DNA from: Haliotis rubra
Taxonomy: Eukaryota
Reading direction: 5' to 3'
DNA: 64,000 nucleotides
NCBI RefSeq assembly: GCF_003918875.1
Contig: NW_025767076.1
Span: forward strand, 682,001 to 746,000
A model generated the notes under the pieces. The model ran no database searches, had not been told where the DNA came from, and was given only the letters and a program-made list of their open reading frames with translations. The translations under genes and the position numbers were made by a program. Below, piece by piece: positions 4,777-58,752 of this stretch. Position 1 is the first letter of the stretch. Each line of letters opens with the position of its first letter.

Positions 4777-4821
4777 ATGACAGAATATATCGGCAAGGAC
4801 GAGCACACCCTGCGTTCTCTT
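4777..4821 (+). CDS. SMTN: Smoothelin-like gene, first coding exon (MTEYIGKDEHTLRSL)
   Basis: ATG in gacATCATGa context, 15 codons, then a GTAAGT donor at 4822 (phase 0). Joined to 33809 it gives MTEYIGKDEHTLRSL|LDACTSFEERRKIRAAIRQLK, which resembles the vertebrate smoothelin N-terminus as recalled (DExxLRxLLExxxDxxERRxIRxAIRxL). The symbol means family-level similarity, not proven orthology. Confidence 0.85.
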
Positions 4822-6539
4822 GTAAGTTTATGTGTACACACTTCATATGCTCCGCCGAACAAGTTCACATGTTTCTATTGTTTAGGATGGACAACCTGCA
4901 GAAACATGTCGATCTCAAATAATCTTCCTAATAGATTTAAGAGCATTTCGCAATTGAAATAAAAGCTATAAACCTCGTGACAATGCGCCGACCTATATCC
5001 ATGCTGGTCTGACAGAATTATGTAGGCAGAAGACATAACCTGCCGCCTAATGACAGGACACTCTGCTGTCGGGCCGGCGTTACTCGGCAGTATATTTAGT
5101 GAATGGCATTGGCTGTAATATGTTTACACACGAGTGGGTACAGGCACTGCTTCAGTACAACAAACGATAACGATATGGAGAAATGAGCATTAAAATATTT
5201 GTACTGAATATATGCATTGTTTACATATTGTTTACTGATGATGTTTATCATATGGCGAAATATTGTCCTTTTTATGTGTATGACATTGTTGTGTATCCTT
5301 TGATGTGTACGACACAGTTTATTGTCAATGACATGTCAATAGCATTAAGGAAGTGCACAGACATATTCAGTATTTCTTTGTGTTAAAGTATTCATCATCC
5401 AAGGAAACAATGCACAGTGAATATTGTTACCTTTACTGTTGCGCCCATAAGATATGTGACAAATTACAGTTCCTATGCCTGAAGTCCAGACATCTTGGTC
5501 TAATGATGTGAATTACAATGTGTCAGGTAAACGCAACATTACATTTTATGTGTAATGTATGATGGTTGATTGTGTTTCAGTATTTGCTGGTAACGTAGGT
5601 AATTTGACACTGATCAATATTCATGATTTCTGGCATTAACAAAATATAGGCAAGTACTATCAACAGATGACAGCTTGAAATTACAACTCGGTGAAACCAA
5701 TGGAATATATTTTTGTGTCAACAGCACATTCATATTTGCCACCAAACTTGACTGCAGTATGAGTTTCTCAGATTAAATATTGAGATATGACAATTTGATA
5801 AGGTTAGCAAACATTCCTTGTTCAACAGAATAACTGCAAATACATTCTGATCAGGGAAACAAGATATTTGATATGGCATACTTTTGTGACACGCCTCTAT
5901 AATAATCATTATCATAATCATAATGTAGTGTTTAACGAGTAAATAATTCCGAAATGTGTCCCAACCTTTTTGTTCACTGTCATGTAATGAAGTTAATATA
6001 TGTGTCAGAGTGTGTTAATGGCTGTCCACAGCAAGCCGTGTGAAGGAAGAAAAACACTGCATGAATGTCGGGAATGAAAGATAAACATGGCCGTCATGAT
6101 TGAAATCAATAACACTTATCAGAGTCCCTTTTCTTGCAGGGTTACACAAACATATAGAAAATGTCTTGTGAGAAAAGTAATATCTACAAGTTTTATCGGC
6201 ATGTAATAAACCTTTAATCGATTATCTTATTTATCTTTTTCATTATTTGCTGTGAATACCTGAGCTTGCCTAGGCTTGATGTTTTATACCTGATGTTCAC
6301 AGTTGTCCAGGGAAGAGGGAAGGTACAGATTCAGTAACATATCTTTGTTAACATTTGTGTTGTGTGTATGGAGTACGAAGGTGTAGTAACCGAACAGGAG
6401 AGACTCCATACCTGTCTACCTTAGGACGAGAGGAACAAACAGGTGTTTTACAATAGTGGTATAGGTACATCTCGGGTGCGATGTTAGGTTCACGATGTAG
6501 TAGTAGAAGTAGTGATGGTAATAATAGTAGCGGCTGTAG

Positions 6540-6763
6540 TTGGTTGGTTTGTTGTTTAACTCTGCACTCAGCAATATTCCAGCTATATGGTGGCAGTCGG
6601 TAAATAATCGAGTTTGGCCCAGACAATCCAGTGATCAACAGCATGAGCATCAATCTACGCAATTGGGATACATTGACGTGTGTCAGCCAAGTCAGTGAGC
6701 CTGACCACCTGATTCCGTTAGTCGTTTCTTGTGACAAGCATGGGTTGCTGAAGACCAATTCTT
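6540..6763 (-). mobile_element. SINE-like interspersed repeat (family A)
   Basis: Reverse complement of the 23289-23530 element (cagcaatattccagctatatgg...gacaagcatgggtt). Confidence 0.88.
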
Positions 6764-7734
6764 GTAGTTGAAGGAGGAAACTAAAGTTTGTCCTTGAAGA
6801 CATCATGTTGAGTGTTCCAGTATTTGGTCTCCCCAGTGTCGGAGGTGTGTTGAGGGGGATGTACATACCATATACACAGTCTCTGACCAGAAAAACATAC
6901 ACACCTATCTATAAGTGTAGTTTGATGTTAAAGTTTATGATATATTAACAGAAAGTTACTTGAAGTATAATTTGTACTGGATTACATTTGTTGTTTACTA
7001 CTTTGTTTCCATGGTTACCACAGTGCTAAGTATCACTTACAAAGTAGAGTAGACTGAGATTGGCAGTGTTCAAGCAGGTTTACTGCACAGCATGTTGTGA
7101 AGTGAGCTCCTGAACATGTACAGGGTGGATCAAGTGGAGTTGTGTCATGTTTATGATAGTACAGCTGCATCACGGAGCTTTGTGGCATATTAGACACCAG
7201 CACCCTCTTAACCAAAATTTATGTTTCTTTTCATGTTTAACACTCAGCTGTGTGACAATGTCTTGTAGATAAATAAGTCTGGATCAGACAAGCTTGGGGT
7301 TGACATTATGAGCACTGATCCATGCAGTCAGGGTGTAAAGACACAGTGTCAACCAATATGCTAAGTTGGATCTCTATATGCATTAAGCTGCTTCTTCCGA
7401 CAAGCACAGTTTGCCAGAGACCTAACCCAGTGTTCCAGAGGGGATCACAGGTTATGACAACTTGAGATGAAATAGTCCCTTTCCTATCTGACATTTATGA
7501 AACTTTCTCATGTTTCTCTATTTGACTGTTTGCCATATAACCTGTCATAATATTCTATTCATTGCAAATAAGACCACCTTTGTTAAATCAAGTCAGGTAT
7601 GAACAACCAGGCTCTGTGATATGTTAAATCCACATTCACGTACATTAGGCCAGATACTTTTATAGTTGGTTCACCTTTCAGAGCATGAAGTCCTCATATG
7701 ATATTCGCAAGAATGACATGTGACAATTACTCTT

Positions 7735-7950
7735 TGGTTGGTTGAATGATTGACTGATTGAGCAATATTCCAGCTATATGGTGGTGGTCTGTAAATAATC
7801 AAGTCTGAACCAGGCAATCCAGTGATCAATAGCATGAGCATCATTCTACACATTTGGGATCTGATGACATGTACCAACCAAGCCAGCGAGCCTGACCACC
7901 TGTTCCTGTTAGTCGCCTCTTACGACAAGCATGGGTTACTGAAGACCAGT
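7735..7950 (-). mobile_element. SINE-like interspersed repeat (family A)
   Basis: Third copy. The shared pseudo-peptide LMLLITGL..IIYRPPPYSWNIA appears in the ORF track for all three copies. Confidence 0.88.
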
Positions 7951-8251
7951 ATTTACTCTTTGGATGCCTCCCTTCTAAAATGAGATCTAAAGAAAAAACA
8001 ACAAGATTAGATTCTGTTATTGCCACTGCATGATGTGTAAGTAATGATGATTAATATGTATGAATATCCTTATTCTAATGAAAGGTCAGTGATATATTTC
8101 TGTGTGTTTTGCTATAGTGAAGCATGGTTTATTTATATATTCATAGGACTAGGAGTATTAGTTTGTTAAAAAAGTAGAATTTGAAATAAAACCCCAGCTC
8201 TGCAACCACCTGCACTGAATTTGAGGTCAAACTATATTTCAAACCTTCTCA

Positions 8252-8577
8252 GGCCAGACCAATTTAATTTCTTGTTTTACGGATTTTTGTCCTCAGAAAA
8301 CCTAAAGGCAGGAGGGAAATAAATAAAAATATAATCACCAGTCAAAGTAATATTCCTTCTAAATACTCAAAGTATTTTACTTTTGGCAATTTATGAAGTG
8401 TATATTGGGCAAAAAACAATCTAAAAAAGAAATTTCTTGTAAGTTTACATTTGTGGCCAATAAAAACATTAGGATTTTATTTTTTTGAGCAGGGAAAATT
8501 CTTTTTTTTTTTTCTTCTTATTCTTGAAAAAATATGACAGGCGGATCCATAAAACAAGAAATAATATTGGTCTGGCC
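8252..8577. mobile_element. MITE, PIF/Harbinger-like
   Basis: ~33-bp imperfect TIRs (ggccagaccaatttaatttcttgttttacggat / atccataaaacaagaaataatattggtctggcc) with a 3-bp TCA duplication (8249-8251, 8578-8580). Confidence 0.8.
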
Positions 8578-9202
8578 TCATTATAAATAAGATGCTTCAC
8601 ATGCAGTGTTTTTACTAAATACTAGTATCTCATTTACTTGGTGTGTATTGCATGGTTTTATGTGTTGTAATATTTATTTCATCTCTGGAGCTGTCTAAAA
8701 CATTGTTTCATTAATGTACTTGTTAGGCTCCTTATAGACAGAGTGATGCCATGTTAGCATGATTAAAGTGTACAGTGCGTCACTTTCAGCTATACAAACA
8801 GTCCTATTTTAACCAGTATGTATACTTCAGTTACCATGACTACTGGCGTTAATCTGTAAGTCATGTATAATTTTCCGGTTTTGTGACAATCCATTTATTT
8901 CAAACTGATGACACCAGATACAGGAAATATTGCATGAAGCTGAACATTTGGGAAGATTGTGTAGAACACCTAACGTTATGTATATGCTAGCGATACAGGT
9001 TTAGATTCAGTCTAGTGTCTGCTGGGGAGGTGCACCTATGTCAGGGTACAGTACCTCTCCATGTCGCTGCTGATCAAGGCATTGTGTAGGAAACTGCCCC
9101 TGTACAAGCTTGTTGTCAAGTAGTGCAATTACCTTGTTCCTGGTTCAGTGGAACAACGGAAGGCAGCACTTCAATAGAATCAGATTGGGAGGATGTACTA
9201 CC

Positions 9203-10800
9203 ATAGTCGCTTCCATGCTGTATAGTTGAGGGATGGGCTACTATAGTCGCTTCCATGCTGTATAGTTGAGGGATGGGCTACTATAGTCGCTTCCATGCTG
9301 TATAGTTGAGGGATGGGCTACTATAGTCGCTTCCATGCTGTATAGTTGAGGGATGGGCTACTATAGTCGCTTCCATGCTGTATAGTTGAGGGATGGGCTA
9401 CTATAGTCGCTTCCATGCTGTATAGTTGAGGGATGGGCAGTAAGTCGCTTCCATGCTGTACAGTTGAGGGATGGGCTACTATAGTCGCTTCCATGCTGTA
9501 TAGTTGGGGGATGGGCAGTAAGTCGCTTCCATGCTGTATAGTTGAGGGATGGGCTACTATAGTCGCTTCCATGCTGTATAGTTGAGGGATGGGCTACTAT
9601 AGTCACCTCCATGCTGTATAGTTGAGGGATGGGCTACTATAGTCACCTTCATGCTGTATAGTTGAGGGATGGGTTACTATAGTCGCTTCCGTGCTGTATA
9701 GTTGAGGGATGGGCTACTATAGTCGCTTCCGTGCTGTATAGTTGAGGGATGGGCTACTATAGTCACCTCCATGCTGTATAGTTGAGGGATGGGCTACTAT
9801 AGTCACCTTCATGCTGTATAGTTGAGGGATGGGCTACTATAGTCACCTTCATGCTGTATAGTTGAGGGATGGGTTACTATAGTCGCTTCCATGCTGTATA
9901 GTTGAGGGATGGGCTACTATAGTCGCTTCCATGCTGTATAGTTGAGGGATGGGCTACTATAGTCACCTTCCATGCTGTATAGTTGAGGGATGGGCTACTA
10001 TAGTCACCTTCCATGCTGTATAGTTGAGGGATGGGTTACTATAGTCGCCTTCCGTGCTGTATAGTTGAGGGATGGGCTACTATAGTCGCTGAGGGATGGG
10101 CTACTATAGTCACTTCCATGCTGTATAGTTGAGGGATGGGCTACTATAGTCTTCCTCCATGCTGTATAGTTGAGGGATGGGCTACTATAGTCGCTTCCAT
10201 GCTGTATATAGTTGAGGGATGGGCTACTATAGTCACCTCCATGCTGTATAGTTGAGGGATGGGCTACTATAGTCACCTTCATGCTGTATAGTTGAGGGAT
10301 GGGCTACTATAGTCGCTTCCGTGCTGTATAGTTGAGGGATGGGCTACTATAGTCGCTTCCATGCTGTATAGTTGAGGGATGGGCTACTATAGTCGCTTCC
10401 ATGCTGTATAGTTGAGGGATGGGCTACTATAGTCGCTTCCATGCTGTATAGTTGAGGGATGGGCTACTATAGTCGCTTCCGTGCTGTATAGTTGAGGGAT
10501 GGGCTACTATAGTCACCTCCATGCTGTATAGTTGAGGGATGGGCTACTATAGTCGCTTCCATGCTGTATAGTTGAGGGATGGGCTACTATAGTCGCTTCC
10601 ATGCTGTATAGTTGAGGGATGGGCTACTATAGTCACTTCCATGCTGTATAGTTGAGGGATGGGCTACTATAGTCGCTTCCGTGCTGTATAGTTGAGGGAT
10701 GGGCAGTAAGTCGCTTCCGTGCTGTATAGTTGAGGGATGGGCTACTATAGTCGCTTTCATGCTGTATAGTTGAGGGATGGGCTACTATAGTCGCTTCCAT
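9203..10800. repeat. Minisatellite, 40-bp unit (actatagtcgcttccatgctgtatagttgagggatgggct)
   Basis: About 40 near-identical copies. Confidence 0.97.
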
Positions 10801-13800
10801 CATTGTATGTCTGTATTGTTAGTTAAGTGTCCTCACACTAAGGGTTGTGTGTATTGTATGTCTGTCTTGTTAGTTAAGTGTCCCAACACTATGGGTTGTG
10901 TGTATTGTATGTCTATCTTGTAAGTTAAGTGTCCTCACACTAAGGGTTGTGTGTATTGTATGTCTATCTTGTTAGTAAGTGTCCTCACACTGAGGGTTGT
11001 GTGTATTGTATGTCTATCTTGTTAGTAAGTGTCCTCACACTAAGGGTTGTGTACTGTATTGTATGTCTGTCTTGTTAGTAAGTGTCCTCACACTGAGGGT
11101 TGTGTGTATTGTATGTCTATCTTGTTAGTAAGTGTCCTCACACTGAGGGTTGTGTGTATTGTATGTCTATCTTGTTAGTAAGTGTCCTCACACTAAGGGT
11201 TGTGTGTATTGTATGTCTGTCTTGTTAGTTAAGTGTCCTCACACTAAGGGTTGTGTGTATTGTATGTCTATCTTGTTAGTAAGTGTCCTCACACTAAGGG
11301 TTGTGTGTATTGTATGTCTATCTTGTTAGTAAGTGTCCTCACACTAAGGGATGTGTGTATTGTATGTCTATCTTGTTAGTAAGTGTCCTCACACTAAGGG
11401 TTGTGTGTATTGTATGTCTATCTTGTTAGTAAGTGTCCTCACACTGAGGGTTGTGTACTGTATTGTATGTCTGTCTTGTTAGTAAGTGTCCTCACACTAA
11501 GGGTTGTGTGTATGTATTGTATGTCTGTCTTGTTAGTTAAGTGTCCTCACACTGAGGGTTGTGTATACTGTATTGTATGTCTGTCTTGTTAGTTAAGTGT
11601 CCTCACACTGAGGGTACTGTATTGTATGTCTGTCTTGTTAGTAAGTGTCCTCACACTGAGGGTTGTGTACTTGTATGTCTGTGTTATGTCTGTCTTGTTA
11701 GTAAGTGTCCTCACACTAAGGGTTGTGTGTGTATTGTATGTCTATCTTGTTAGTAAGTGTCCTCACACTAAGGGCTGTGTGTTAGTGTACAAGGGCTGTG
11801 CAAGGGTGTATGTCTGTCTTGTTAGTAAGTGTCCTCACACTAAGGGTTGTGTGTGTATTGTATGTCTGTCTTGTTAGTAAGTGTCCTCACACTAAGGGTT
11901 GTGTGTATTGTATGTCTGTCTTGTTAGTAAGTGTCCTCACACTGAGGGTTGTGTGTATTGTATGTCTGTCTTGTTAGTAAGTGTCCTCACACTGAGGGTT
12001 GTGTGTATTGTATGTCTGTCTTGTTAGTAAGTGTCCTCACACTGAGGGTTGTGTGTGTATTGTATGTCTGTCTTGTTAGTAAGTGTCCTCACACTGAGGG
12101 TTGTGTACTGTATTGTATGTCTGTCTTGTTAGTAAGTGTCCTCACACTGAGGGTTGTGTGTATTGTATGTCTGTCTCCTCACACTGAGGGTTGTGTGTAT
12201 TGTATGTCTGTCTTGTTAGTAAGTGTCCTCACACTGAGGGTTGTGTGTATTGTATGTCTGTCTTGTTAGTAAGTGTCCTCACACTGAGGGTTGTGTGTAT
12301 TGTATGTCTGTCTTGTTAGTAAGTGTCCTCACACTGAGGGTTGTGTACTGTATTGTATGTCTATCTTGTTAGTAAGTGTCCTCACACTGAGAGCTGTGTG
12401 TATTGTATGTCTGTCTTGTTAGTAAGTGTCCTCACACTAAGGGTTGTGTGTATTGTATGTCTGTCTTGTTAGTTAAGTGTCCTCACACTGAGGGTTGTGT
12501 ACTGTATTGTATGTCTGTCTTGTTAGTAAGTGTCCTCACACTAAGGGCTGTGTGTATTGTATGTCTGTCTTGTTAGTAAGTGTCCTCACACACTGAGGGT
12601 TGTGTACTGTATTGTATGTCTGTCTTGTTAGTAAGTGTCCTCACACTGAGGGTTGTGTGTATTGTATGTCTATCTTGTTAGTAAGTGTCCTCACACTAGG
12701 GGGTGTATGTGTCTTGTTAGTGTGTCCTCACACTGAGGGTGTATGTCTGTCTTGTTAGTAAGTGTCCTCACACTAAGGGGTTGTGTGTATTGTATGTCTG
12801 TCTTGTTAGTAAGTGTCCTCACACTGAGGGTTGTGTGTGTATTGTATGTCTGTCTTGTTAGTAAGTGTCCTCACACTGAGGGTTGTGTACTGTATTGTAT
12901 GTCTGTCTTGTTAGTAAGTGTCACACTGAGGGTTGTGTGTATTAATATGTCTGTCTTGTTAGTAAGTGTCCTCACACTGAGGGTTGTGTACTGTATTGTA
13001 TGTCTGTCTTGTTAGTAAGTGTCCTCACACTGAGGGTTGTGTGTATTGTATGTCTGTCTTGTTAGTAAGTGTCCTCCTCACACTGAGGGGTGTGTGTATT
13101 GTATGTCTGTCTTGTTAGTAAGTGTCCTCACACTGAGGGTTGTGTACTGTATTGTATGTCTGTCTTGTTAGTAAGTGTCCTCACACCGAGGGTTGTGTAC
13201 TGTCTGTCTTGTTAGCAAAGTCCGTCACTGATTGTATGTCTGTCTTGTTAGTAATGTGTCCTCACACACCAAGGGTTGTGTACCGTATTGTATGTCTGTC
13301 TTGTTAGTAAAGTGTCCCACACACACTGAGGGGTTGTGTAATGGCTGTATTGTATGTCTGTCTTGTTAGTAAAGTGTCCTCACACACTGTGTGGTATGTC
13401 TGTCTTGTTGTTGTGTGTATTGTATGTCTGTCTTGTTAGTAAGTGTCCTCACACTGAAGGGTTGTGTGTATTGTATGTGTACACTAAGGGTTGTGTCTGT
13501 CTTCTTGTTAGTAAGTGTCCTCACACTAAGGGTTGTGTGTGTATTGTATGTCTGTCTTGTTAGTAAGTGTCCTCACACTAAGGGTTGTGTATTGTATTGT
13601 ATGTCTGTCTTGTTAGTAAGTGTCCTCACACTAAGGGTTGTGTACTGTATTGTATGTCTGTCTTGTTAGTAAGTGTCCTCACACTGTTGTGTGTATTGTA
13701 TGTCTGTCTTGTTAGTAAGTGTCCTCCACACTAAGGGTTGTGTGTATTGTATGTCTGTCTTGTTAGTAAGTGTCCTCACACTGGGTTGTGTGTAGGTCTG

Positions 13801-16800
13801 TCTTGTTAGTAAGTGTCCTCACACTGTTGTGTACTATTGTATGTCTATCTTGTTAGTAAGTGTCCTCACACTAAGGGTTGTGTGTATTGTATGTCTGTCT
13901 TGTTAGTAAGTGTCCTCACACCAAGGGTTGTGTGTATTGTATGTCTGTCTTGTTAGTAAGTGTCCTCACACTTGTGTGTCTTGGTCTGTTGTGTACTGTA
14001 TTGTATTGTCTGTCTGTGTTAGTTAAGTGTCCTCACACTGAGGGTTGTGTACTGTATTGTATGTCTGTCTTGTTAGTAAGTGTCCTCACACTGAGGGGTT
14101 GTGTACTGTATTGTATGTCTGTCTTGTTAGTAAGTGTCCTCACACTGAGGGGTGGGTTGTGTGTGTATTGTATGTCTTGTTAGTAAGTGTCCTCACACTG
14201 GGTTGTGTGTATATGTCTGTCTTGTTAGTAAGTGTCCTCACACTAAGGGCTGTGTGTATTGTATGTATGTCTGTCTTGTTAGTTAAGTGTCCCTCACACT
14301 AAGGGTTGTGTACTGTATTGTATGTCTGTCTTGTTAGTTAAGTGTCCTCACACTAAGGGTTGTGTGTATTGTATGTCTGTCTTGTTAGTAAGTGTCCTCA
14401 CACTGAGGGTTGTGTGTATGTATTGTATGTCTGTCTTGTTAGTAAGTGTCCTCACACTGAGGGTTGTGTACTGTATTGTATGTCTGTCTTGTTAGTAAGT
14501 GTCCTCACACTAAGGGTTGTGTGTATTGTATGTCTGTCTTGTTAGTAAGTGTCCTCACACTGAGGGTTGTGTGTATTGTATGTCTATCTTGTTAGTAAGT
14601 GTCCTCACACTAAGGGCTGTGTGTATTGTATGTCTATCTTGTTAGTAAGTGTCCTCACACTAAGGGTTGTGTGTATTGTATGTCTATCTTGTTAGTAAGT
14701 GTCCTCACACTAAGGGTTGTGTGTATTGTATGTCTGTCTTGTTAGTTAAGTGTCCTCACACTAAGGGTTGTGTGTATTGTATGTCTGTCTTGTTAGTTAA
14801 GTCCCTCACACTAAGGGTTGTGTGTATTGTATGTCTGTCTTGTTAGTAAGTGTCCTCACACTGAGGGTTGTGTACTGTATTGTATGTCTGTCTTGTTAGT
14901 AAGTGTCCTCACACTGAGGGTTGTGTGTGTGTATGTATGTCTGTCTTGTTAGTAAGTGTCCTCACACTGAGGGTTGTGTGTGTATTGTATGTCTGTCTTG
15001 TTAGTAAGTGTCCTCACACTGAGGGTTGTGTGTATTGTATGTCTGTCTTGTTAGTAAGTGTCCTCACACTGAGGGTTGTGTGTATTGTATGTCTGTCTTG
15101 TTAGTAAGTGTCCTCACACTGAGGGTTGTGTACTGTATTGTATGTCTGTCTTGTTAGTAAGTGTCCTCACACTGAGGGTTGTGTGTGTATTGTATGTCTG
15201 TCTTGTTAGTAAGTGTCCTCACACTGAGGGTTGTGTGTATTGTATGTCTGTCTTGTTAGTAAGTGTCCTCACACTGAGGGTTGTGTACTGTATTGTATGT
15301 CTATCTTGTTAGTAAGTGTCCTCACACTGAGAGCTGTGTGTATTGTATGTCTGTCTTGTTAGTAAGTGTCCTCACACTAAGGGTTGTGTGTATTGTATGT
15401 CTGTCTTGTTAGTTAAGTGTCCTCACACTGAGGGTTGTGTACTGTATTGTATGTCTGTCTTGTTAGTAAGTGTCCTCACATTAAGGGCTGTGTGTATTGT
15501 ATGTCTGTCTTGTTAGTAAGTGTCCTCACACTGAGGGTTGTGTACTGTATTGTATGTCTATCTTGTTAGTAAGTGTCCTCACACTGAGGGTTGTGTACTG
15601 TATTGTATGTCTGTCTTGTTAGTAAGTGTCCTCACACTAAGGGTTGTGTGTATTGTATGTCTGTCTTGTTAGTTAAGTGTCCTCACACTGAGGGTTGTGT
15701 ACTGTATTGTATGTCTGTCTTGTTAGTAAGTGTCCTCACACTAAGGGCTGTGTGTATTGTATGTCTGTCTTGTTAGTAAGTGTCCTCACACTAAGGGTTG
15801 TGTGTATTGTATGTCTGTCTTGTTAGTAGTAAGTGTCCTCACACTGAGGGTTGTGTGTATTGTATGTCTGTCTTGTTAGTAAGTGTCCTCACACTGAGGG
15901 TTGTGTACTGTATTGTATGTCTGTCTTGTTAGTAAGTGTCCTCACACTAAGGGCTGTGTGTATTGTATGTCTGTCTTGTTAGTAAGTGTCCTCACACTAA
16001 GGGTTGTGTGTATTGTATGTCTGTCTTGTTAGTTAAGTGTCCTCACACTGAAGGTTGTGTACTGTATTGTATGTCTATCTTGTTAGTAAGTGTCCTCACA
16101 CTAAGGGCTGTGTGTATTGTATGTCTGTCTTGTTAGTAAGTGTCCTCACACTAAGGGTTGTGTGTATTGTATGTCTGTCTTGTTAGTAAGTGTGCTCACA
16201 CTGAGGGTTGTGTACTGTATTGTATGTCTGTCTTGTTAGTAAGTGTCCTCACACTGAGGGTTGTGTACTGTATTGTATGTCTGTCTTGTTAGTAAGTGTC
16301 CTCACACTGAGGGTTGTGTACTGTATTGTATGTCTATCTTGTTAGTAAGTGTCCTCACACTGAGGGTTGTGTACTGTATTGTATGTCTGTCTTGTTAGTA
16401 AGTGTCCTCACACTAAGGGTTGTGTGTATTGTATGTCTGTCTTGTTAGTTAAGTGTCCTCACACTGAGGGTTGTGTACTGTATTGTATGTCTGTCTTGTT
16501 AGTAAGTGTCCTCACACTAAGGGTTGTGTACTGTATTGTATGTCTATCTTGTTAGTAAGTGTCCTCACACTAAGGGTTGTGTGTATTGTATGTCTGTCTT
16601 GTTAGTAAGTGTCCTCACACTAAGGGCTTGTGTGTATTGTATGTCTGTCTTGTTAGTTAAGTGTCCTCACACTAAGGGTTGTGTGTATTGTATGTCTGTC
16701 TTGTTAGTAAGTGTCCTCACACTGAGGGTTGTGTGTATTGTATGTCTGTCTTGTTAGTAAGTGTCCTCACACTAAGGGTTGTGTGTATTGTATGTCTGTC

Positions 16801-16988
16801 TTGTTAGTAAGTGTCCTCACACTGAGGGTTGTGTGTATTGTATGTCTGTCTTGTTAGTAAGTGTCCTCACACTGAGGGTTGTGTACTGTATTGTATGTCT
16901 GTCTTGTTAGTAAGTGTCCTGACACTGAGGGTTGTGTACTGTATTGTATGTCTGTCTTGTTAGTAAGTGTCCTCACACTGAGGGTGTG
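10801..16988. repeat. Minisatellite, ~50-bp unit (gtattgtatgtctgtcttgttagtaagtgtcctcacactragggttgtgt)
   Basis: Roughly 120 copies, directly abutting the 40-bp array. Confidence 0.97.
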
Positions 16989-17505
16989 TGAGTTGTGATA
17001 CAGGGAGGAGGTAATCTGATCTATCTAACACCCAATCTTTTCAGGTGAAGGGCCATTATGTTGGGAACAGTGCCTGTAATTACTGCCCTTGAAGCAGGGC
17101 AGGGTTAGTATGGTGGACTTGTCCTTCACTGTAGGCTGCAGGGGAATAAAGGCATGGGTTCTCAGGCTGGGCTGGTATTGTTTTACCGTGTGACAAGTGA
17201 CTTGTTGAGGCCACCATGCTGGCTTCAGTCATACACTATAGGTACATGTATCACAATAAGCATAATGTAGAATCTATGGCAGAACAGTTAGGTTGTTTCT
17301 TTGTGTTTTCCTGCTGAGAAAGCCTGTCATTCCCTGCCCAAGAAGGACAGTATGTACAATATGTATAGGAACATCTCCTCTCACCAACACATGGATATAT
17401 TCTGGAATTAATTATCAGTGGCTGCTATCATGTCTGCAGAGGGAATGAGCTATGGAAAACAGCAGCAATTATATTTCAATTTATCTAGTCTTCTTTATTT
17501 ATATT

Positions 17506-18911
17506 TGTCAGGGTAGAGACTGCGATCTGGTAGAATCGGAGATTCTACCAGTAGAGATTGCGATCGTAGTCTCTACTGGTAGAGACTACGATTATATGGA
17601 ATAACCTATGCAAGCAAGTGCAAGCTTATGCAAGCAAGTATAATAAGTGGGGATAATGTTTTCCTATTATTTGCCAGTTATAATTGAACTTATTTATTGT
17701 TATCTTGTTAACTTTATTTGTTAAGTCTGTTTTGGAGTAAGGTATTTTGTTATTGTTTTTTGAGTGGAGTCCAAATTTGGCAGCTTGGTCTCATGAGGTA
17801 AATACAGTGTTACAAACCATTTTAATTTTTTATTTTGATATTGTTTACAGTGAGGTGTTAAATGTTTGTTATCAAAGTCTCAGTTAAAAGTAGGAAGTTC
17901 ATTCAGATGTATTTCAAAACTTATGATCAGTAATTGTTACAAAAACACTGCTTTCCAAAGAGGTGGGGTAATGACCAGGTGGGGATATGGCAGATGGGGT
18001 AATGACCTGGTGGGGAATTGCCCTACACCTATCCTCCCAAAATGCCGACATGCCGATACACCTATAGCTTATAACAACAAACCAGTTCTGTATTTCCTGG
18101 AGCAGTGTTACAATAAGCCAACATGCTTGTTTAATGATCATTTGAAATTTATTGTTAAATAAAGAAATGGGTTTATGAGCATTCACATATGTATTGTATT
18201 ATTTAATTTGGAAAAAAAATAATTGTTTTGGGGATTAAATGACTAAATGTGAGTTATGTCTCTGAAAAATCAGGCGTGTGAAAAGGGCACCGAGAACATT
18301 TTTTAGCCGTGCCATTTCAATAATGACCGTGCCATGGCACACTAATATATGGGGTATTTCGAACCCTGATAACAGTTGATCTCTTGATGAAAGAAGTTGA
18401 CTCCAAAAAACATGTCCATGACTCCCTCTGATGATGACTTCTAAATTTTTATGCCTAGGGCAAACACTGATTATGCAATTGATCTTGCTTGTAAACAGTT
18501 TTGTAATATATGTATATATTGTAATATGATCTCTCAAGTCACATTTGTATTTTTAGTCCTTAATATATCTGTAGAAGTGGAAACAGTCTAGTGTTATATC
18601 TGAATAAAATTCATAGTACTGTTCAGAAAAAGTGTCTTTGTTGTTTACCCACAGATCACTCAGAGTTTCTACCAGTTGAAGACGATTGCAGCCTCTACTA
18701 GTAGGATCGGAGTTTCTACCAGTTGAATTGGAAAATGTACTGGTAGAATCTCCGATTCAACCAGTAGAGACTACGATTGCAATATCTACTAGTAGGATCG
18801 GAGATTCTACCAGTAGAGTCTCCGATCGCAGTCTCTACTGGTAGAGACTCCGATCGCAATCTCTACTGGTAGAATCTCCGATTCTACCAGATCGCAGTCT
18901 CTACCCTGACA
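17506..18911. mobile_element. Non-autonomous TIR DNA transposon, Ginger-like
   Basis: TGTCA...TGACA termini, long TIRs built of palindromic sub-repeats (ctggtagaatcggagattctaccag), and a 4-bp TATT duplication (17502-17505, 18912-18915). Confidence 0.8.
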
Positions 18912-19967
18912 TATTCATCTGAATCAGTTTTTGGTTCCCCCTCTCCATGGTGATATCACATCAGTTGGAGTTTGTTCTCTTTTGTTATTTCTTTTGCTAT
19001 CAGTCCATTAGTACAGAAACTTAAACCACTTCTTTTCCCAACCTGCTGAACATTTTCACATAACTTGTTTCTCCGTCCATGTGTACAACAAAGAAAACTT
19101 TTCTTTTTGTGTACGAATTTAAAATGGCCACCATGTTTGGGTGTAAAACATTGTGTGACTGCTGTCAAAGTTTAAGGTCACTGTCATTCCAGTATGGCAG
19201 TTGTCTCTCTCTTTTATGAAAGAACACCAGAAATATACTTTGGGCCATTATCACATTTCTAAACGCTGATTGGTTAATGTGATCTATGATGAGTTTGATA
19301 GTACATTGGGTGCAGGTTGGTATACGTTGTTCTCTCTATTAATTAACTTCTTCAACATAAAGAAACAGACTAAATAAACGATGGAAGCTCAGCAGATGCT
19401 GTTACTTAGAAATACCCTTGTTGATTTGATTATACAGAAGTTACCCCTGCTGTGAAAGCATGTTTGGATTTATGATCTTATAGATGATAATTTGAGTGAG
19501 ATTGATTTTGATACCAGTTTTGTGTTTCGTAGCATCATGTATCTTGCTCCATATTTATGTATCCTGTTTAACTGCAGAATAAAATGTGGAAATGTCTCCA
19601 AACAATGGTTAAGGAGTGTAGTGTTTCCTTTACACAAACTAGGTAACTTAAAACATGTGAAAAACTCCACAAAAGACAACATGTTTCTTTTGCAAAGTCA
19701 TATTAAGAAATATTTATCAAAATTGATAACTTGATTTTATTGTCTATTTGTCTATTTATGAAAAGCATTCAATTCAGTTAATAGGGATCTTTTATGGTTT
19801 GTAATGTAATTGCTTGATTTCAGCATTCAGCGTAATATGTTGAATATAAGAAGAGATACATACTTGGGTAAAGTTATCAGAATTTTCTGTATCTGAGTAT
19901 TTTGACTCCTCGAGTGGAGGTATTCAAGGTTGTGTTTCAAGTCCGCTCTTGTTCTCCATGTGTATAT

Positions 19968-21806
19968 TAGTGGTGTAATGATTCATTGATAGTATCGATG
20001 TTTGCATCGTCAACTACAAATTACGAGTGCATCGATACAAACACATTTAGGCAATATATCAGGATATTTATATCGCAAGGGTCCATGATACATCGATGTA
20101 TCGCCACAAGAGACGATATATCCCGATACTACTTAAATACTACTTAAAGGTCACATGCAACCAAAAAATCAAACATAATTAAAACACAATTATCACTTAT
20201 TCATGACATATAATATACATTGCTGGTTATGAAAAAACTTATAAACAAAATTATAAGCGTACAATCGCAAATCAGAAGTGCAATATTGTGTACTTGAGTT
20301 TACTTCCCAAGAAACGAAGCAGCCGGGATACCGAACCCAGTCAGAGCGGGTGGGTGTGCACTCAAGTGTAACGGCTGGTTCATTTGCAGATGCCCTCACG
20401 GCTGATTATGTGTGTATATAGAGATGTTGGGTTTTGTAAATACATGCTCATTTTTTGTGTATAACATTTTACAATCAACAGACATCATAACATGTCATGT
20501 GTTCAAGTATCACACCTGCTTGTCTGTGTAATTACATAATGTGACAGAGACCGAAATCGGGCCATAAATCAATGCATTTTGTTTATGGTGTATAGCCAGA
20601 TAGGTGTTAAGTTCAAATTGCATGTGGTCAGTGATAGCAGCTGTGTATTGAATATTGTCATTAGCAGACAGGCAGGTGTCAATAAAACAAGACATTGAGT
20701 TTTGTCTGTGACAACAACATATCTATATCACAGTTAGAAATTCTGTCAACGCTAAATAACGACATTGCTTTTAAGTATCGAACTGAGAAAGTGACTCGGT
20801 AAGAAGAACGTGTGGTGAAATAGACAAACCCGCTTCCAAGCTGCGCGAACCTATTTCACTGCGCACGTGCTATGAGCGCAGCCCAGCTGTTGAAACCAGT
20901 TTTCCCCAGAAAAGTCGGGGGAAAATTAGTGAAACGTTTGAACTCCGATTTCGCGTGTTTTTTTTCATCGCGTTATTTTTCAACTTTATAAGTTGAACTT
21001 GCATTTTTGACGATTTGTTTCGGTAAGTCCATACCGAAAGGTATCAGAATCTGCAAAGTTGTGTTTTACGTTGCATGTGACCTTTAAGGTTGTAAGGAGT
21101 ATTGCATTAGGATTAGGAAGGGAGTCTCTTTGAAATACTTCTAAATTTTAAAAACAAACTGAACCTTTAGGAATTTGTTTGTGTCTGTCATCTTTGTTAC
21201 ATGAACAAAGGAGTTGGTGTATCAGTGAAAGAATGTGAACATTTTTCAATCTCTGTGAACTGGTAAGACTTGTCTTTAAGTAATTGAAACATGTTTTAGT
21301 TGTTTGACAAATATCACATTTTATTAACAACTATGAACGATGTCTTAGCTTTGTTAAGAAAGAGAAGATAAAATTTTGAAAGCATACTTAAAGAGTTTTT
21401 TTCAGTGATTCTGGTATAAATGACATTGAATTGTCTGTGAAAGCATTGGTGCAGAAACACAACTTTCCAAGGGAAACCTAGATCAAGGTATACTGAATAT
21501 GTTTAATTATACTGTCTTAAGCATTAAATGCTGAAACTTTATTAGATGAACAGCCTTTTAAGTGTGTGTGAATGTAACACCTGTTCTCCTGTATAACAAA
21601 TAAAGATTCAGTAATTTTATCTATCATATATGTCCTGTATTTAGAATTGTAAAGTATCGGGATACGTATCGTATCGCCATCACTGTATCATGATGATAAT
21701 CGTGTCGCAGGTTACTTGCCAATACTATCATGATATATCATCTCGCCTCATTAAACTGGTATGAGGATATATCGTCTCACCACTTAGGCACCGATACACA
21801 GCTCTA
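19968..21806. mobile_element. Old hAT-like non-autonomous element hosting a Kolobok-like insertion
   Basis: TAG...CTA ends, gatac/gtatc-rich inverted subterminal blocks (tcccgatact / agtatcggga), and a degenerate 8-bp flank gtgtatat / gtggatag (6/8). Confidence 0.5.
20148..21083. mobile_element. Non-autonomous DNA transposon, Kolobok-like
   Basis: TTAA|aggtcacatgcaac ... gttgcatgtgacct|TTAA: perfect 14-bp TIR, purine-purine terminus, TTAA target duplication. Confidence 0.85.
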
Positions 21807-21899
21807 GTGGATAGACCAGTTACAGTCAGATATTGGACAAAATGTTGGAGAAGGTATTTTTGAAGTTTTTGAAAGGCATTTAGAAGTTGGATGAACATG

Positions 21900-22070
21900 A
21901 ATACATGACACGTGTTATGGAAAACAACTTCTTTTTTTATTCTTTACATAACGTTTCAGAGCTAATTCTTGCTCTTTCAGCATTCACCTGATGAAGGAGC
22001 AAGATTTAGCTCTGAAACATTGTGTAAAGAATAAACAAGAAGTTGTTTTCCATAAAACATGTCATGTATT
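21900..22070. repeat. ~170-bp foldback palindrome containing a hammerhead-ribozyme-like core (probable Penelope-like element end)
   Basis: The two arms are near-perfect reverse complements. The right arm reads CTGATGA-a-GGAGC-loop-GCTCT-GAAA-CA-ttg-TG-TA at 21988-22026. Confidence 0.7.
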
Positions 22071-22123
22071 GAGGTATTTGTGGTACTCAGGAGTCTGCAG
22101 AGTACCTTATTGTTTTGTTGTAT

Positions 22124-22451
22124 CAGTGTTTCCGTTCTCCGGTATATACCTGAAAATCACGGGTAAAATTTGCTGGGGACCGGTAATTTGAAACCCAGCC
22201 GGACACTGCGTCCGGTAAATAATCATGTATTAAAATAAAAAAATCATGGGTAAGCGAAATGACAGTCTTGGCTGTGCTTTCATGGTCGCAAAAACTCGTA
22301 TGTTTCGGAAATACCCAGGCTAAAAATAACTTTAAAATGAGTACTTACAGTATGGCAATAAGATACGACCGACAAATTTCATTCATGACCGGTAAAATTT
22401 TAGGTCGCCTGACACAGTGTCAGATAAATAATTAAGTCAGCGGAAACACTG
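22124..22451. mobile_element. MITE with CAGTGTTTCCG TIRs (hAT/P-like)
   Basis: cagtgtttccg ... cggaaacactg flanked by an exact GTTGTAT direct repeat, with internal ccggtaaa motifs. Confidence 0.75.
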
Positions 22452-22821
22452 GTTGTATGCAGGTGATTTGTGTTTGTTTGCAGATGATTTTTCAGTTTGC
22501 AACAAAAGATCGATTTATTAAACCAGTTTTGTCAATGAGAGAGAAATGCTGGTCTTTAGAAATGGGGGTAAAATTGAGGGTCAGGAAGTGGTCGAAAGTT
22601 TTCACATATTTCAATTACTTAGGATTACATTTGTAAAACAGGCTTTGCTGCACCAAATCAATTCAGAATTTGATAAGTAAAGCAAATAAGGCATTAGCTT
22701 CTATTAAAATGTGCTCATCCATCATATTACTTTAATTTTGTTCAGCATGTTTGACACACAGTAAAGCCAGTCATTTTATATACAGCTGAAATTTGGAGAT
22801 ATCAATATTGGGCTAAATTAA

Positions 22822-22957
22822 AGTGAGTGAGTGAGTATGGTTTTACGCTGCTTTTCATGGCGGGGGACACCAGAAATGGGCTTCACACTTTGTACCCATG
22901 TGGGGAATCGAACCCGGGCCTTTGGCGTGACGAACAAACACTTTAACCACTAGGCTA
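22822..22957 (-). mobile_element. tRNA-derived SINE (family B)
   Basis: Homologous to 1173-1319, with B-box GGTTCGATTCC on the - strand. Confidence 0.85.
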
Positions 22958-23288
22958 ATATGTACTTGGTGCTGGGTATAAGTGTACAACTGCTGCTACT
23001 CTGGAGTGTGGACTGACTGTGGAGTTATTGTGTACCGGCTTAAGCTGTTAGAAATGCTATGTCACAGATACCCTAAACAATGTTATAAAGGGCTATTGGA
23101 GTATAACATGGGGTTCACATGTGAAATAAAAGCTGTACTCAATGGTTTTGATTTTGTATGGGAAGCCCAAGCTGTGGTTAATAAAGAGGTTTTTATGTTT
23201 GATTTTATATTGAGAATAATCTTTTCTGGTATCTATAATAGCACATCCCTTGACCAGTACACAGACTTTTTATACCTGGAACCAACCT

Positions 23289-23530
23289 GTGAAGGTCCGG
23301 GTTAGATTATTGGCCTTCAGTAACCCATGCTTGTCGTAAGAGGCGACTAATGGGATCGGGTGGTCAGGCTTGCTGGCTTTGTTGACACATGTCATCGGTT
23401 CTCATTTGCGCAGATCGATGCTCATGCTGTTGGTCACTGGATTGTCTGGTCCAGACTCGATTATTTACAGACCTCCGCCATATAGCTGGAATATTGCTGA
23501 GTGCGCCGTAAAACTAAACTCACTCACTCA
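23289..23530 (+). mobile_element. SINE-like interspersed repeat (family A), longest copy
   Basis: Matches the two - strand copies and ends in a cactcactca tail. Confidence 0.88.
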
Positions 23531-23612
23531 CCATAACTGGAACCATATCTCGTAAGAATTCAATCGAGGCATATCAGGAAGAGAATCATCTTCCACAGAC
23601 CTGCTGCACTTC

Positions 23613-23849
23613 AGTGTCCCAATCCACAAAGCATTTATAGCGATACAACATTTGTAAGTCTATGGTAAACTATAGAGCTACGACAGGTCATAACATTTCA
23701 TTTGTAGCGATACAACATTTGTAAGTCTATGGTAAACTATAGAGCTACGACAGGTCATAACATTACATTTGTAGCGATACAACATTGGTAAGTCTATGGT
23801 AAACTATAGAGCTACGACAGGTCATAACATTACGAGGATCGGGACCCAG
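23613..23849. mobile_element. Small MITE-like element with an internal 3x ~67-bp tandem repeat
   Basis: Imperfect inverted ends (gtcccaatccac / gaggatcgggac) surround three copies of agcgatacaacatttgtaagtctatggtaaactatagagctacgacaggtcataacatt. Confidence 0.55.
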
Positions 23850-24553
23850 ATTATTATAGACATTGGAAGATGGGAAGCCATAACCTGCCCTATAAGAATA
23901 TGTCAAAGTTGCAACAATAAGACTGTGGATGATGAGTTTTATTTTTTGTATACTTCTCCTGTATATGGTGATATAAGCTACAAATATTGTAAAGATACAC
24001 CACCACATGTTGATAAGGACTTCAGAATACAAAGTTTGAAATCGGGAAACATATACATATGTACAAATATATTGTTGTCGGAAATTAGCCAATACCTACA
24101 GGATGCAGTTCTGTGTGCACCTGATACTAGAATATTGAGTCTGTACTATAGCCATTGACACAGGTTGGAATCTTTATGCTGCTGCCTTGGAACATTGGCC
24201 TAAGACCTTATACTGAATACAGACTGATATGTTGAATCATGCCATATGGTAATATTGTGTCAACAGATCTATAATATTACCAATGTACATTTGATGTATT
24301 TGAGGATGGAAGTCCGTATAGTCTCGGCATGTATGGTATAGCTCTCAGTGGTGTACTGAACATGGTGAACAAGGAGATCCAGTCATCCCTGGGACCATTA
24401 AACATGGTCACAAATCCAACAAGTGTACACATCTGTCATAGACTTCCTTATACCAGAAAAGGGTGTCTGAGTACAAGGACTGACACTATGACTGATACGG
24501 CTCATAACTAAACCACAACATGAATCCTTCACCAGAACCTTTGTTCAACTTGT

Positions 24554-24890
24554 GACCGCCTCCGTGGTGTAGTGGTTAGAGCGTCCACCCAGAGAGCGGA
24601 AGGTCGTAGGCTCGATCCCCGACCGCCTCATACCAAAAGACATTAAAATATGGTACTTGTTGGTACATTATTGGGTACAACAAGGACTGGTCGGCTCGGG
24701 AGTCAGTATATTGTGTCTGAGTGGGGTATTCATGCTTCACTGCGGCATGGTATCTCAGTGGGCTAGCACTATAAAACCAGCTTCAGTCTGGGCTAGTACA
24801 AGCAGACACACATACACATACACATGTATGCACGTCGTCATATGAACGAAATATTCTCAAGCACGACATAAAACCCACTTTCACCTCACC
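24554..24890 (+). mobile_element. Full-length tRNA-derived SINE (family C) with 13-bp TSD
   Basis: tRNA-like head (GGTGTAGTGGTTAGAGCG ... GGCTCGATCCC) and exact TTGTTCAACTTGT duplication at 24541-24553 and 24891-24903. Confidence 0.88.
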
Positions 24891-25816: not shown

Positions 25817-25988
25817 ATATACTGAGAGAAACAAATAAAGGAACACAGGAAAATTCAAGCGTTCCTTTATTATTTTCAAGTTTTCATCACCACAGCGCTA
25901 TTCAAAGCTGGTGATGAAAACTAGAAAATATTCCAGGAACACTTGAATTTACGTGTGTTCCTTTATTTGTTTCTCTACGTATAGTATA
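25817..25988. repeat. ~170-bp foldback palindrome (MITE-like)
   Basis: agagaaacaaataaaggaacaca...ttttcatcacca / tggtgatgaaaa...tgtgttcctttatttgtttctct. Confidence 0.85.
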
Positions 25989-35447: not shown

Positions 35448-35549
35448 GTAACATCTTTGAGACTAATTGTTCTCTGTAGAATCACCCTGCTAACACTGAA
35501 TGGCAAACATGATCATACATCTCAACAACAAATCACGAACCTACTTAGC

Positions 35550-43709: not shown

Positions 43710-43761
43710 ATGGCTTCTCTCTCCAGGCAGAAGAGAGGAACCTCAGCTAGAAGTAAGCCTG
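43710..43761 (+). CDS. Candidate alternative first coding exon (MASLSRQKRGTSARSKP+G)
   Basis: ATCATGG start context, 17 codons + 1 nt, strong CTG|GTAAGT donor at 43762. Phase 1 splices in frame to exon 4 (56374). Confidence 0.55.
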
Positions 43762-56373: not shown

Positions 56374-56543
56374 GTGATTTGAAGAAGAGCAACTCCGATG
56401 ACAGCAAACATAAACGTAGTAACCGTGGCCTTTCCCCAAGGGGAACAACCTCCACTAGTGTACCTAGAGACAGCGGTACTGGTGGAGCCAAACTACACCT
56501 GGACTATGACCAGATAGAAACACTGGAGGAATTCAAAACATTG
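56374..56543 (+). CDS. SMTN: Smoothelin-like gene, exon 4 ((G)DLKKSNSDD...LDYDQIETLEEFKTL)
   Basis: Acceptor ttgttgttttcag, donor TTG|gtaggt at 56544. Phase 1/0 matches exons 3 and 5. Ends with the acidic first half of a smoothelin repeat. Confidence 0.88.
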
Positions 56544-57124
56544 GTAGGTTTTCTTTGCCATGTAGTAGATTGTTCCTCTGTGGGCCAGTGGTTACACGTA
56601 GCACTGTTCCTGCCATCAGCAATCCATCATTGCCTTCATGTATATTTCAGTAACTGTTATCAGAGTCACAGCAAAACATCTGAAGGTCATGTTACAGCAG
56701 CAGATACAATGGCCGAGTAACTCTGATGCTGGTGGTCAATGTCTTTTGTATATTGCAGACATGACAAGAAACTGATATGGTTACGTCAGCCTTGCCAGAT
56801 CACACGGGGCACTTCTAACAAATGTGTTACCAATATCGTCAGAGAGGCGTACTTGTATGGCATTCTCTACTGTCAGTTTGAAAGGGGAATGCACTGATCT
56901 CACTCTATTTGTAAGGGGAAGTGCTTATGATAGTGTTTCTGCAAGAGCAAGTGAGCTTTTTAGTGTGTTCATCTCAAAATGACACTATATATGACAGATG
57001 GCAACTGTGTAACACCTACACCTACAACACACATACAATTTGTCAAAATCCTGTAGTAGTGTCAAAAGTTGAGCATAATTTACGGCATATTTGAGGATAG
57101 TCCACCATGATGACGCCAGTGAAG

Positions 57125-58240
57125 AACCACTGATCTACACAAGTCACCAACTATCCCAGTGTAGAACTACCGATATACACAAGTCAACAACTATCCCAAG
57201 AACTACCATATCACCAACTATCCCAGTGTAGAACTACCGATATACACAGTCACCAACTATCCCATTGTAGAACTATCGATATACAGAAGTCACCAACTAT
57301 CCCAGTGTAGAACTACCAATATATACAGTCACCAACTATCCTAGTGTAGAACTACTGATATACAGAAGTCACCAACTATCCCAGTGTAGAATTACCGATA
57401 TACACAAGTTACCAACTATCCTAGTGTAGAACTACTGATATACACAAGTCACCAACTATCCTAGTGTAGAACTACCGATATATACAAGTCACCAACTATC
57501 CCAGTGTAGAACTACCGATATACACAAGTCACCAACTATCCTAGTGTAGAACTACTGATATACACAAGTCACCAACTATCCCAGTGTAGAACCTCCGATA
57601 TACACAAGTCACCAACTATCCCTGTGTAGAACTACTGATATACACAAGTCACTAACTATCCTAGTGTAAAACTACTGATATATACAGTCACCAACTATCC
57701 CATTGTAGAACTAATGATATACACAAGTCAACAACTATCCCAGTGTAGAACTACCGATATATACAAGTCACCAACTATCCCAGTGTAGAACTACCGATAT
57801 ACACAAGTCACCAACTATCCCAGTGTAGAACTACCGATATACACAAGTCAACAACTATCCCAGTGTAGAACTACCGATATACACAAGTCACCAACTATCC
57901 TAGTGTAGAACTACTGATATACACAAGTCACCAACTATCCCAGTGTAGAACTACCGATATACACAAGTCACCAACTATCCTAGTGTAGAACTACTGATAT
58001 ACACAAGTCAACAACTATCCCAGTGTAGAACTACCGATATACACAAGTCACCAACTATCCTAGTGTAGAACTACTGATATACACAAGTCACCAACTATCC
58101 CAGTGTAGAACTACCGATATACACAAGTCACCAACTATCCTAGTGTAGAACTACTGATATACACAAGTCACCAAGTATCCTAGTGTAAAACCACTGATAT
58201 ACACAAGTCACCAACTATCCTAGTGTAGAATCACTGATAT
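57125..58240. repeat. Minisatellite, 40-bp unit (aagtcaccaactatcccagtgtagaactaccgatatacac)
   Basis: About 27 copies. Confidence 0.96.
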
Positions 58241-58673
58241 TCTCAAGTAGGTAGGAAGCCATTGGGTTGCCTTCCCAAATCCAGGAGTGTGATGAAGATA
58301 TCTTGGAGTTAATGGTGTATCTGTAAGTCAGGTGGGTCGGTGGACACTGGGATTACTCCCCAGACACCTTGGTGTGGAGGGGAGAGCAGTTCTGTCTGTA
58401 CACAGCTAGAATCGATGAGAGACAAGTCCCACACAACACACCAACACTCTATCAATATTGTCCCAACAAATAACCTCACAACAGGATAACACTTCAATTT
58501 AGTTTGATTAAAGAAACATTGCCAATTTTGTGATGGTTGGGTGGGATCGTGTGTGTTTAATAGGCTTTGGCCACAATACTTCTGACTTTTTGAATTTTAT
58601 GACAATTGGTGTCGTACAAGTGAAACTTGGTGCTGGGATGTATGGCTGGTAAACCTGATTGACTTGTTTGCAG

Positions 58674-58752
58674 CTCGCGGTCACAGAAGATTTTGAAGAG
58701 AAGAGGAAAATCAGGAATTCTATGCGTCAGCTTCGAAGACGGTTGGAATTAG
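58674..58752 (+). CDS. SMTN: Smoothelin-like gene, exon 5 (LAVTEDFEEKRKIRNSMRQLRRRLEL); gene continues downstream
   Basis: Acceptor cttgtttgcag, donor G|gtaagt at 58753, phase 0/1. Contains the DFEEKRKIRxxMRQLR motif. Confidence 0.9.

Follow-up and report, generated by a model that had tools for sequence, protein, structure and literature searches.

Why should a protein domain be interrupted by an intron at the same codon each time that it recurs in a gene? The question is raised by a smoothelin-like gene of the abalone Haliotis rubra, the 5′ exons of which lie on the + strand of a 64,000-nt window (C2186:682001-746000) between positions 4777 and 58752; coordinates given without a contig refer to this window. 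The initial annotation had recognized three Smoothelin repeats, each cut between two Leu codons, and had read this arrangement as a device by which exon skipping would rebuild chimeric domains and tune protein length. We find that the window very probably represents the 5′ fifth of a large gastropod smoothelin gene with immunoglobulin (Ig) domains, and that the recurring intron belongs to an inherited, constitutively spliced structure. Our result is mainly a correction: the gene would be an ordinary orthologue of the annotated abalone, limpet and scallop smoothelin genes, and its recurring intron neither a local invention nor a splicing device.

The mid-domain intron of the Smoothelin repeats

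Exon positions were read directly and then tabulated by script. Exon 1 (E1, 4777..4821, +; 45 nt, 15 aa) opens with an ATG start, encodes the N-terminal half of Smoothelin repeat 1 and ends in phase 0 with the donor gtaagt. It is followed, inside repeat 1, by a phase-0 GT..AG intron (intron 1, 4822..33808, +), whose length of 28,987 nt includes the estimated length of an assembly gap (33240-33376); the two halves of repeat 1 are thus separated by about 29 kb, as first annotated. Exon 2 (E2, 33809..34861, +; 1053 nt, phase 0 at both ends, between cag and gtaagc) completes repeat 1 with its C-terminal half, continues into a Ser-rich linker and opens repeat 2 with its N-terminal half; the C-terminal half of repeat 2 is encoded by exon 3 (E3, 35351..35447, +; 97 nt, phase 0 to 1). 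Exon 4 (E4, 56374..56543, +; 170 nt, phase 1 to 0) combines a linker with the N-terminal half of repeat 3, and exon 5 (E5, 58674..58752, +; 79 nt, phase 0 to 1) supplies the remaining half. Splice sites from E1 to E5 are canonical, with GT at every donor and a pyrimidine tract plus AG at every acceptor; the phases of the five exons are 0/0, 0/0, 0/1, 1/0 and 0/1, and their coding length sums to 1444 nt. The three mid-domain junctions are all Leu/Leu in phase 0 (RSL/LDAC, QFL/LLRS and KTL/LAVT), in full agreement with the initial reading, as are the phase-1 ends of E3 and E5, which soon close repeats 2 and 3. A second assembly gap lies in intron 3 (52437-52564), 3.8 kb before the next acceptor, compared with 432 nt for the gap in intron 1, and no reading frame crosses either of them. 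A constitutive coding exon inside either gap is not expected, because the Haliotis protein models have no extra residues between E1 and E2 or between E3 and E4.

The repeats were compared with the Pfam Smoothelin profile (PF12510, cut-off 23 bits) exon by exon, hence only C-terminal halves score. The match was strongest in E2 (exon residues 1-21; 30.0 bits, E 4.9e-7, profile positions 27-47), followed by E5 (residues 2-23; 25.4 bits, E 1.4e-5, profile 28-49) and E3 (residues 3-22; 20.6 bits, E 4.2e-4, profile 29-48), the last being under the cut-off when taken alone. With this reservation, the three Smoothelin matches that had been anticipated were recovered. Because of the offsets between exon residues and profile positions, the second-half exons E2, E3 and E5 are all seen to start at profile position 27. 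The first-half exons, searched alone against Pfam, gave no matches, being too short. They were placed with a small hidden Markov model (HMM) built from repeats of other species, the seeds of which were chosen by their intron, which makes this placement somewhat circular; the model also detected one unseeded repeat with the intron and one fly repeat without it. The last residue of each upstream exon corresponds in this model to the last column before the intron, with a clear fit for E1 and for the first-half exon of a fourth repeat (see below) and a marginal one for the ends of E2 and E4. In every Smoothelin repeat of the gene, the domain is split in phase 0 between profile positions 26 and 27. 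The residues on either side of the intron show conservation across repeats (L/M before it, L after it). The observation is real and far beyond chance. Exon anatomy, domain matches, intron positions across species and one E2>E3 RNA joint were all observed directly.

An AlphaFold2 model of repeat 3 of the limpet Patella, obtained with a 12-repeat alignment (mean predicted local distance difference test score, pLDDT, 80.8), shows a hairpin in which residues 19-28 form a short helix and residues 32-55 a long one, with a loop of three residues between them. The intron, after residue 25, falls in this model within the end of helix 1 and coincides with no boundary between structural units.

The 481-aa protein initially predicted agrees with the 1444 coding nucleotides but would account for only one fifth, the N-terminal one, of a protein with four Ig domains and about 2450-2500 aa. 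Judging from exon matches, the window holds only this fifth of a gene that appears to span about 140 kb, some 80 kb of it past the window. Indeed, a fourth Smoothelin repeat with the same split and a smoothelin-type calponin-homology (CH) domain were found 59-80 kb past the window. Across the whole 1.38-Gb genome, the only PF12510 matches that exceed or approach the cut-off lie on this contig and strand, three in the window and one downstream. Repeat 4 is carried by a first-half exon ending with EEELMKI before gtaagt in phase 0 (C2186:804968-805081, +) and by a 76-nt second-half exon between cag and gtaagt (C2186:811565-811640, +; phase 0 to 1, PF12510 24.8 bits), bringing the total to four repeats instead of the three first counted. 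Between repeats 3 and 4 are long Ser/Thr-rich exons and I-set Ig exons. Three of the Ig exons score 75-87 bits for PF07679 (I-set); the fourth I-set Ig is split in two and corresponds in alignment to Ig 2 of the Patella and Haliotis proteins (positions 90890-91196 of the 164-kb stretch searched).

A C-terminal CH domain, initially expected from the family, lies on the same strand (C2186:826071-826244, +; PF00307, 44.3 bits) and is followed by the terminal exon and a stop codon. Its penultimate exon (C2186:826074-826225, L010:74-225, +) measures exactly 152 nt, lies between cag and gtaagt, runs from phase 0 to 2, and is 78-84% identical in translation to CH exons of smoothelin-like proteins. 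It is preceded by two alternative exons that probably include CH helix I, one used in H. rufescens X1 (C2186:820290-820427, +; L009:4290-4427, or 138290-138427 in the 164-kb stretch) and the other in H. asinina X1 (C2186:821568-821708, +; L009:5568-5708, or 139568-139708). Both species annotate these pre-CH exons as mutually exclusive, with 26 or 34 aa. Found together at this locus are the PF12510 domains, C-terminal CH domain and 152-nt penultimate exon of the smoothelin family and, between repeat 3 and the last repeat, the four I-set domains of the Ig-containing lophotrochozoan smoothelins. Every exon can be placed, in order, along single Haliotis RefSeq proteins, from which we infer the linkage of the window exons to the downstream ones; the transcript evidence of the species itself is one E2-E3 contig.

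Age of the intron and of the repeat module

Intron positions were examined at the loci of six relatives by mapping proteins to DNA through exact matching with GT..AG refinement, and every junction was resolved uniquely. The phase-0 intron was found in the same column in all repeats of Patella caerulea (limpet, 4/4), of the hemichordates Saccoglossus kowalevskii (5/5) and Ptychodera flava (5/5), of SMTN from the teleost Chanos chanos (3/3) and of the hydrozoan Clytia hemisphaerica (1/1), and in one of the two repeats of the blowfly Lucilia cuprina. It is thus present in 19 of 20 repeats in six other animals, and in 23 of 24 when the four of this gene are included. The comparison with vertebrate SMTN and a mollusc homologue, suggested at the outset, therefore bears out a common position. 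In Lucilia, one repeat keeps the phase-0/phase-1 intron pair around a 76-nt exon and the other is intron-less inside a 1552-nt exon, which looks like ordinary dipteran intron loss.

The conservation extends to neighbouring features. Non-first bilaterian repeats that keep the intron have a phase-1 intron 24-26 residues later, resulting in exons of 73-82 nt; the corresponding exons here measure 97, 79 and 76 nt. This closing intron is missing from the first repeat in every mapped multi-repeat protein, as it is here. The gene shares with Patella and Saccoglossus a first coding exon of 45 nt (15 aa) with a common residue pattern, and the orthologous intron 1, located at the same domain column, measures 12.8 kb in Patella, 20.9 kb in Saccoglossus and 16.6 kb in Chanos. 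The general scheme would thus be a repeat split in phase 0 at profile position 26/27 and, for all but the first, closed 24-32 residues later by a phase-1 intron.

In all likelihood, to judge from these positions, the mid-domain intron is ancestral and older than the cnidarian-bilaterian split. Its recurrence at one phase-0 position in 19 of the 20 repeats of the six other animals makes inheritance through duplication of the module the one sensible interpretation. The modular duplication of an intron-containing unit, as initially proposed, is thus supported, but as an ancient, apparently pre-bilaterian event, not particular to this mollusc. We then compared individual repeats, using those of H. 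asinina as stand-ins, over 35 residues, so that the results are indicative only. Repeat 1 found its best cross-species matches in the first repeats of Saccoglossus, Ptychodera and Patella; repeat 4 in the last repeats of Owenia, scallop, Ptychodera and Saccoglossus; and repeat 3 in Patella repeat 3. These matches, together with the conserved exon sizes (45 nt for the first exon, 76 nt for the last-repeat exon), indicate that at least the split between first and last repeats is older than the protostome-deuterostome divergence. The two-exon module would accordingly have been present, and already duplicated, before these lineages separated.

With one codon boundary common to a hydrozoan, molluscs, a fly, hemichordates and a fish, the position of the intron in the Smoothelin domain would rank among the more deeply conserved. 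The single account of SMTN gene structure that was found calls only the CH exons well conserved, and the intron pattern is already implicit in annotated orthologues.

Isoforms and alternative readings

The single contig from an RNA-type run (X4; 197 nt) places its first 33 nt on the end of E2 and crosses a GT..AG joint over 489 nt (34861>35351). E3 is covered in full, with 64 nt of the contig left over past its end; the first 2 of these still match, in weak agreement with E4 starting with GT.

Isoforms of relatives were compared in about 45 annotated models (six from H. asinina, six from H. rufescens plus a truncated model, ten from Patella, six from Saccoglossus, three from scallop, two from Ptychodera, three from amphioxus, and others). 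In none of these annotated isoforms, 12 of them from the two Haliotis species, was the first half of one repeat joined to the second half of another. The spacing of the repeats is constant in full-length isoforms, none of which lacks a repeat. Short forms starting at E4 (H. asinina X5, 2123 aa; H. rufescens X6, 2116 aa), smaller by about 375 aa, result from an alternative first exon. The corresponding sequence in the window (43710..43761, +; 17 codons and 1 nt, donor gtaagt, phase 1) translates into the unique N-termini of these two isoforms and looks like an alternative first coding exon; the short form would join E4, without repeats 1 and 2. The rest of the annotated variation involves cassette Ig exons (95-96 aa), a 47-aa cassette and the mutually exclusive pre-CH exons. 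In Saccoglossus X3, an 8-residue first exon is joined to the mid-domain acceptor of repeat 2 and, in scallop X2, a different first exon to that of repeat 1. Since these exons splice into it, the mid-domain acceptor can take other partners, but the product is a half-domain and not a chimera. Isoform length in close relatives would accordingly be set by an internal promoter with its first exon, by cassette Ig exons and by C-terminal cassettes rather than by re-pairing of half-domains.

The reading first attached to the repeats, namely that regulated skips (E1>E3, E1>E5 and E2>E5) rebuild chimeric Smoothelin domains, drop linkers and tune protein length, is sound in its frame arithmetic: E2 (1053 nt), E3 plus E4 (267 nt) and E2 to E4 together (1320 nt) are all multiples of three. 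The conserved residues on both sides of the intron make a hybrid hairpin conceivable, and the first exons of Saccoglossus X3 and scallop X2 do enter a mid-domain acceptor. However, no repeat-to-repeat skip appears among the annotated isoforms surveyed, incomplete as such catalogues are, and short isoforms come from alternative first exons. In addition, the sole RNA contig of the species carries the constitutive E2>E3 joint, and the intron is predicted inside helix 1 of the hairpin instead of between structural units. We consider regulated skipping very unlikely. Hardly better placed is the broader idea that the intron persists because it allows half-hairpins to be re-paired, through rare skipping or alternative first exons; if true, the number of repeats and linkers could change without breaking a domain.

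A somewhat less improbable view, to which we still give little credit, is that the mid-domain phase-0 acceptors were kept as entry points for alternative promoters or first exons, giving half-domain starts. This would account for Saccoglossus X3 (repeat-2 acceptor) and scallop X2 (repeat-1 acceptor), and in Chanos the first exon annotated for repeat 1 bears no relation to the domain. Yet the Haliotis alternative first exon, also present in the window, joins the phase-1 acceptor of E4 and not a mid-domain one, the short forms of Patella likewise join phase-1 acceptors, and a conserved intron position requires no such function. Independent gains of an intron at a favoured insertion site in each repeat have nothing specific to recommend them, parallel gain at proto-splice sites being known in principle. 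The exon ends (CTT/TTG, CTG/TTG, TTG/CTC and ATT/ATG) are unlike the AG/G proto-splice site, hence parallel gain is not credible; moreover, position and phase agree in all but one of the repeats from a cnidarian, lophotrochozoans, an insect, hemichordates and a fish, with a second conserved phase-1 intron. We regard such gains as next to impossible.

The pattern would thus reflect an inherited gene structure with constitutive splicing. Several points weigh against this reading. On their own, repeats 2 and 3 match the domain weakly in their N-terminal halves, and the sequence is presumed to be continuous across the two assembly gaps. The RNA joint of the species itself is E2>E3 only, whereas E1>E2, E3>E4, E4>E5 and the exons past the window are linked by orthology, through RefSeq/GenBank models of other species that are partly computational.

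Other features of the window were noted in passing. Three runs containing exon 2, tried as RNA support, proved to be DNA contigs of another individual (aligned to 33377-39376, with introns covered and about 2% differences). The only indel of this second individual in exon 2 is an in-frame 3-nt deletion at 34608; the flanking introns have 1-nt indels. At least 22 substitutions, among the differences listed, fall in exon 2 (33923-34735; 59 others unlisted), 15 of them amino-acid-changing and 7 silent. All are in the Ser-rich linker and none of those listed in the Smoothelin-coding ends, which suggests that the linker is under weak constraint. In intron 3, 570 bp (38481-39050) are absent from the DNA contigs of the other individual (joint 38480>39051, with 9 letters common to both ends), and word depth there is thousands of times that of the flanks; the segment has the appearance of a high-copy repeat element, the insertion of which is polymorphic. 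Just 3′ of exon 3, the same intron contains a tandem array (35540-35700) of a motif of about 30 nt (...catgtagcaggacacaactgcttgac...). Around exon 1 (3000-5000), the CpG observed/expected ratio is 0.9-1.0, compared with 0-0.4 in the gene body, as would be expected if the main start had an unmethylated promoter island.

The gene among known smoothelins

Relatives were identified throughout by exon-by-exon searches or with database proteins. When the whole library was searched with HMMER, the 51-residue CH exon matched 541 proteins at E≤1e-10. Long proteins aligning in order along the whole 164 kb were the ‘Smoothelin’ of Patella caerulea (1920-1946 aa), the ‘Smoothelin’ of Mizuhopecten yessoensis (2458 aa), an Owenia fusiformis protein (1343 aa) and an Octopus sinensis isoform. 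Pfam gives three or four Smoothelin matches, four I-set and one CH in the Patella, Mizuhopecten and Owenia proteins, and one Smoothelin, two I-set and one CH in the Octopus isoform. A word search seeded by the Patella N-terminus added proteins of Haliotis rufescens, H. cracherodii and H. asinina (2116-2565 aa).

E1 to E5 cover H. asinina X1 without a gap (residues 1-15, 16-357, 358-389, 392-446 and 447-472), with identities of 13/15, 272/351, 30/32, 43/56 and 26/26, respectively. Similarly, they tile residues 1-482 of H. rufescens X1 with no gap (14/15 identities for E1). The downstream exons follow the Haliotis proteins in order to the stop codon at 70-100% identity. Within the 164 kb, E1 is the best match to Patella exon 1, and the end of E4 aligns with that of Patella exon 4. 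Because E1 to E5 and the downstream exons tile the Haliotis proteins in order, we hold with high confidence that the gene is the single smoothelin orthologue of an abalone-like vetigastropod, corresponding to the LOC124147724-type locus of Haliotis. Taken from the models of relatives, the protein would have about 2450-2500 aa and comprise three Smoothelin hairpins with Ser-rich linkers, four I-set Ig domains, a fourth hairpin and the C-terminal CH domain. Expression in muscle, actin binding and a role in the muscle cytoskeleton may be presumed by analogy with the family: among vertebrates, smoothelins are already known to have a CH domain and to be expressed in muscle (literature cited in PMC10643981), and scallop catch muscle shows enrichment of a smoothelin-like protein, in mRNA as well as in protein (PMC5963113).

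The closest known systems are the proteins of H. asinina (XP_067684073.1, 2495 aa) and H. rufescens (XP_046374422.2, 2498 aa), which present the same colinear exon chain (66-100% identity per exon), the same downstream order of Ig domains, repeat 4 and CH domain, and the same alternative first exon. They differ in belonging to other species, with 77% identity in the fast-evolving exon 2, and carry the RefSeq name ‘uncharacterized protein’, with intron positions not stated. The order of three Smoothelin, four I-set, one Smoothelin and one CH domain is also found in Patella caerulea (A0AAN8KAG8, 1946 aa), Mizuhopecten (OWF42675.1, 2458 aa) and Owenia (A0A8S4Q7D1, 1343 aa). Patella exons of 45, 79, 76 and 152 nt, as well as all phases, are those of the present gene, exon 5 being also 79 nt in Patella; in contrast, linker exons of these molluscs and the annelid are far apart in length and sequence, and the scallop gene extends over 205 kb. 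The mollusc and annelid smoothelins examined are thus Ig-containing proteins of about 1300-2500 aa, whereas vertebrate and hemichordate forms are without the Ig block.

In the hemichordates, the first coding exon of Saccoglossus kowalevskii (XP_006817117.1) is again 45 nt, with the pattern M-x-x-Y-x-G-K-D-E-x-x-L-R-K-L. All repeats of this protein and of Ptychodera flava (XP_070571568.1) have the phase-0 intron, with second-half exons of 73-76 nt and a CH exon of 152 nt, but there are five repeats and no Ig domains. A 152-nt penultimate exon, encoding CH helices II-IV, is a hallmark of all vertebrate SMTN, SMTNL1 and SMTNL2 genes (Garg and Fisher 2023, PMC10643981), and a CH exon of this size is also present in Patella, Saccoglossus, Ptychodera, Chanos and Lucilia. 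Likewise, SMTN of the milkfish Chanos chanos (XP_030650211.1) has three repeats with phase-0 introns in the same column and second-half exons of 79 and 76 nt ending in phase 1. Vertebrate SMTN resembles the Haliotis gene in its single C-terminal CH domain and 152-nt penultimate exon (PMC10643981) and differs in having no Ig domains, three repeats instead of four and about 900-1100 aa. It alternates its last CH exons (E20/E21) after the 152-nt exon (PMC10643981), whereas Haliotis models alternate two exons just before it. Its short isoform SMTN-A arises from an internal promoter (PMC10643981), as the short form predicted from the exon at 43710 would here.

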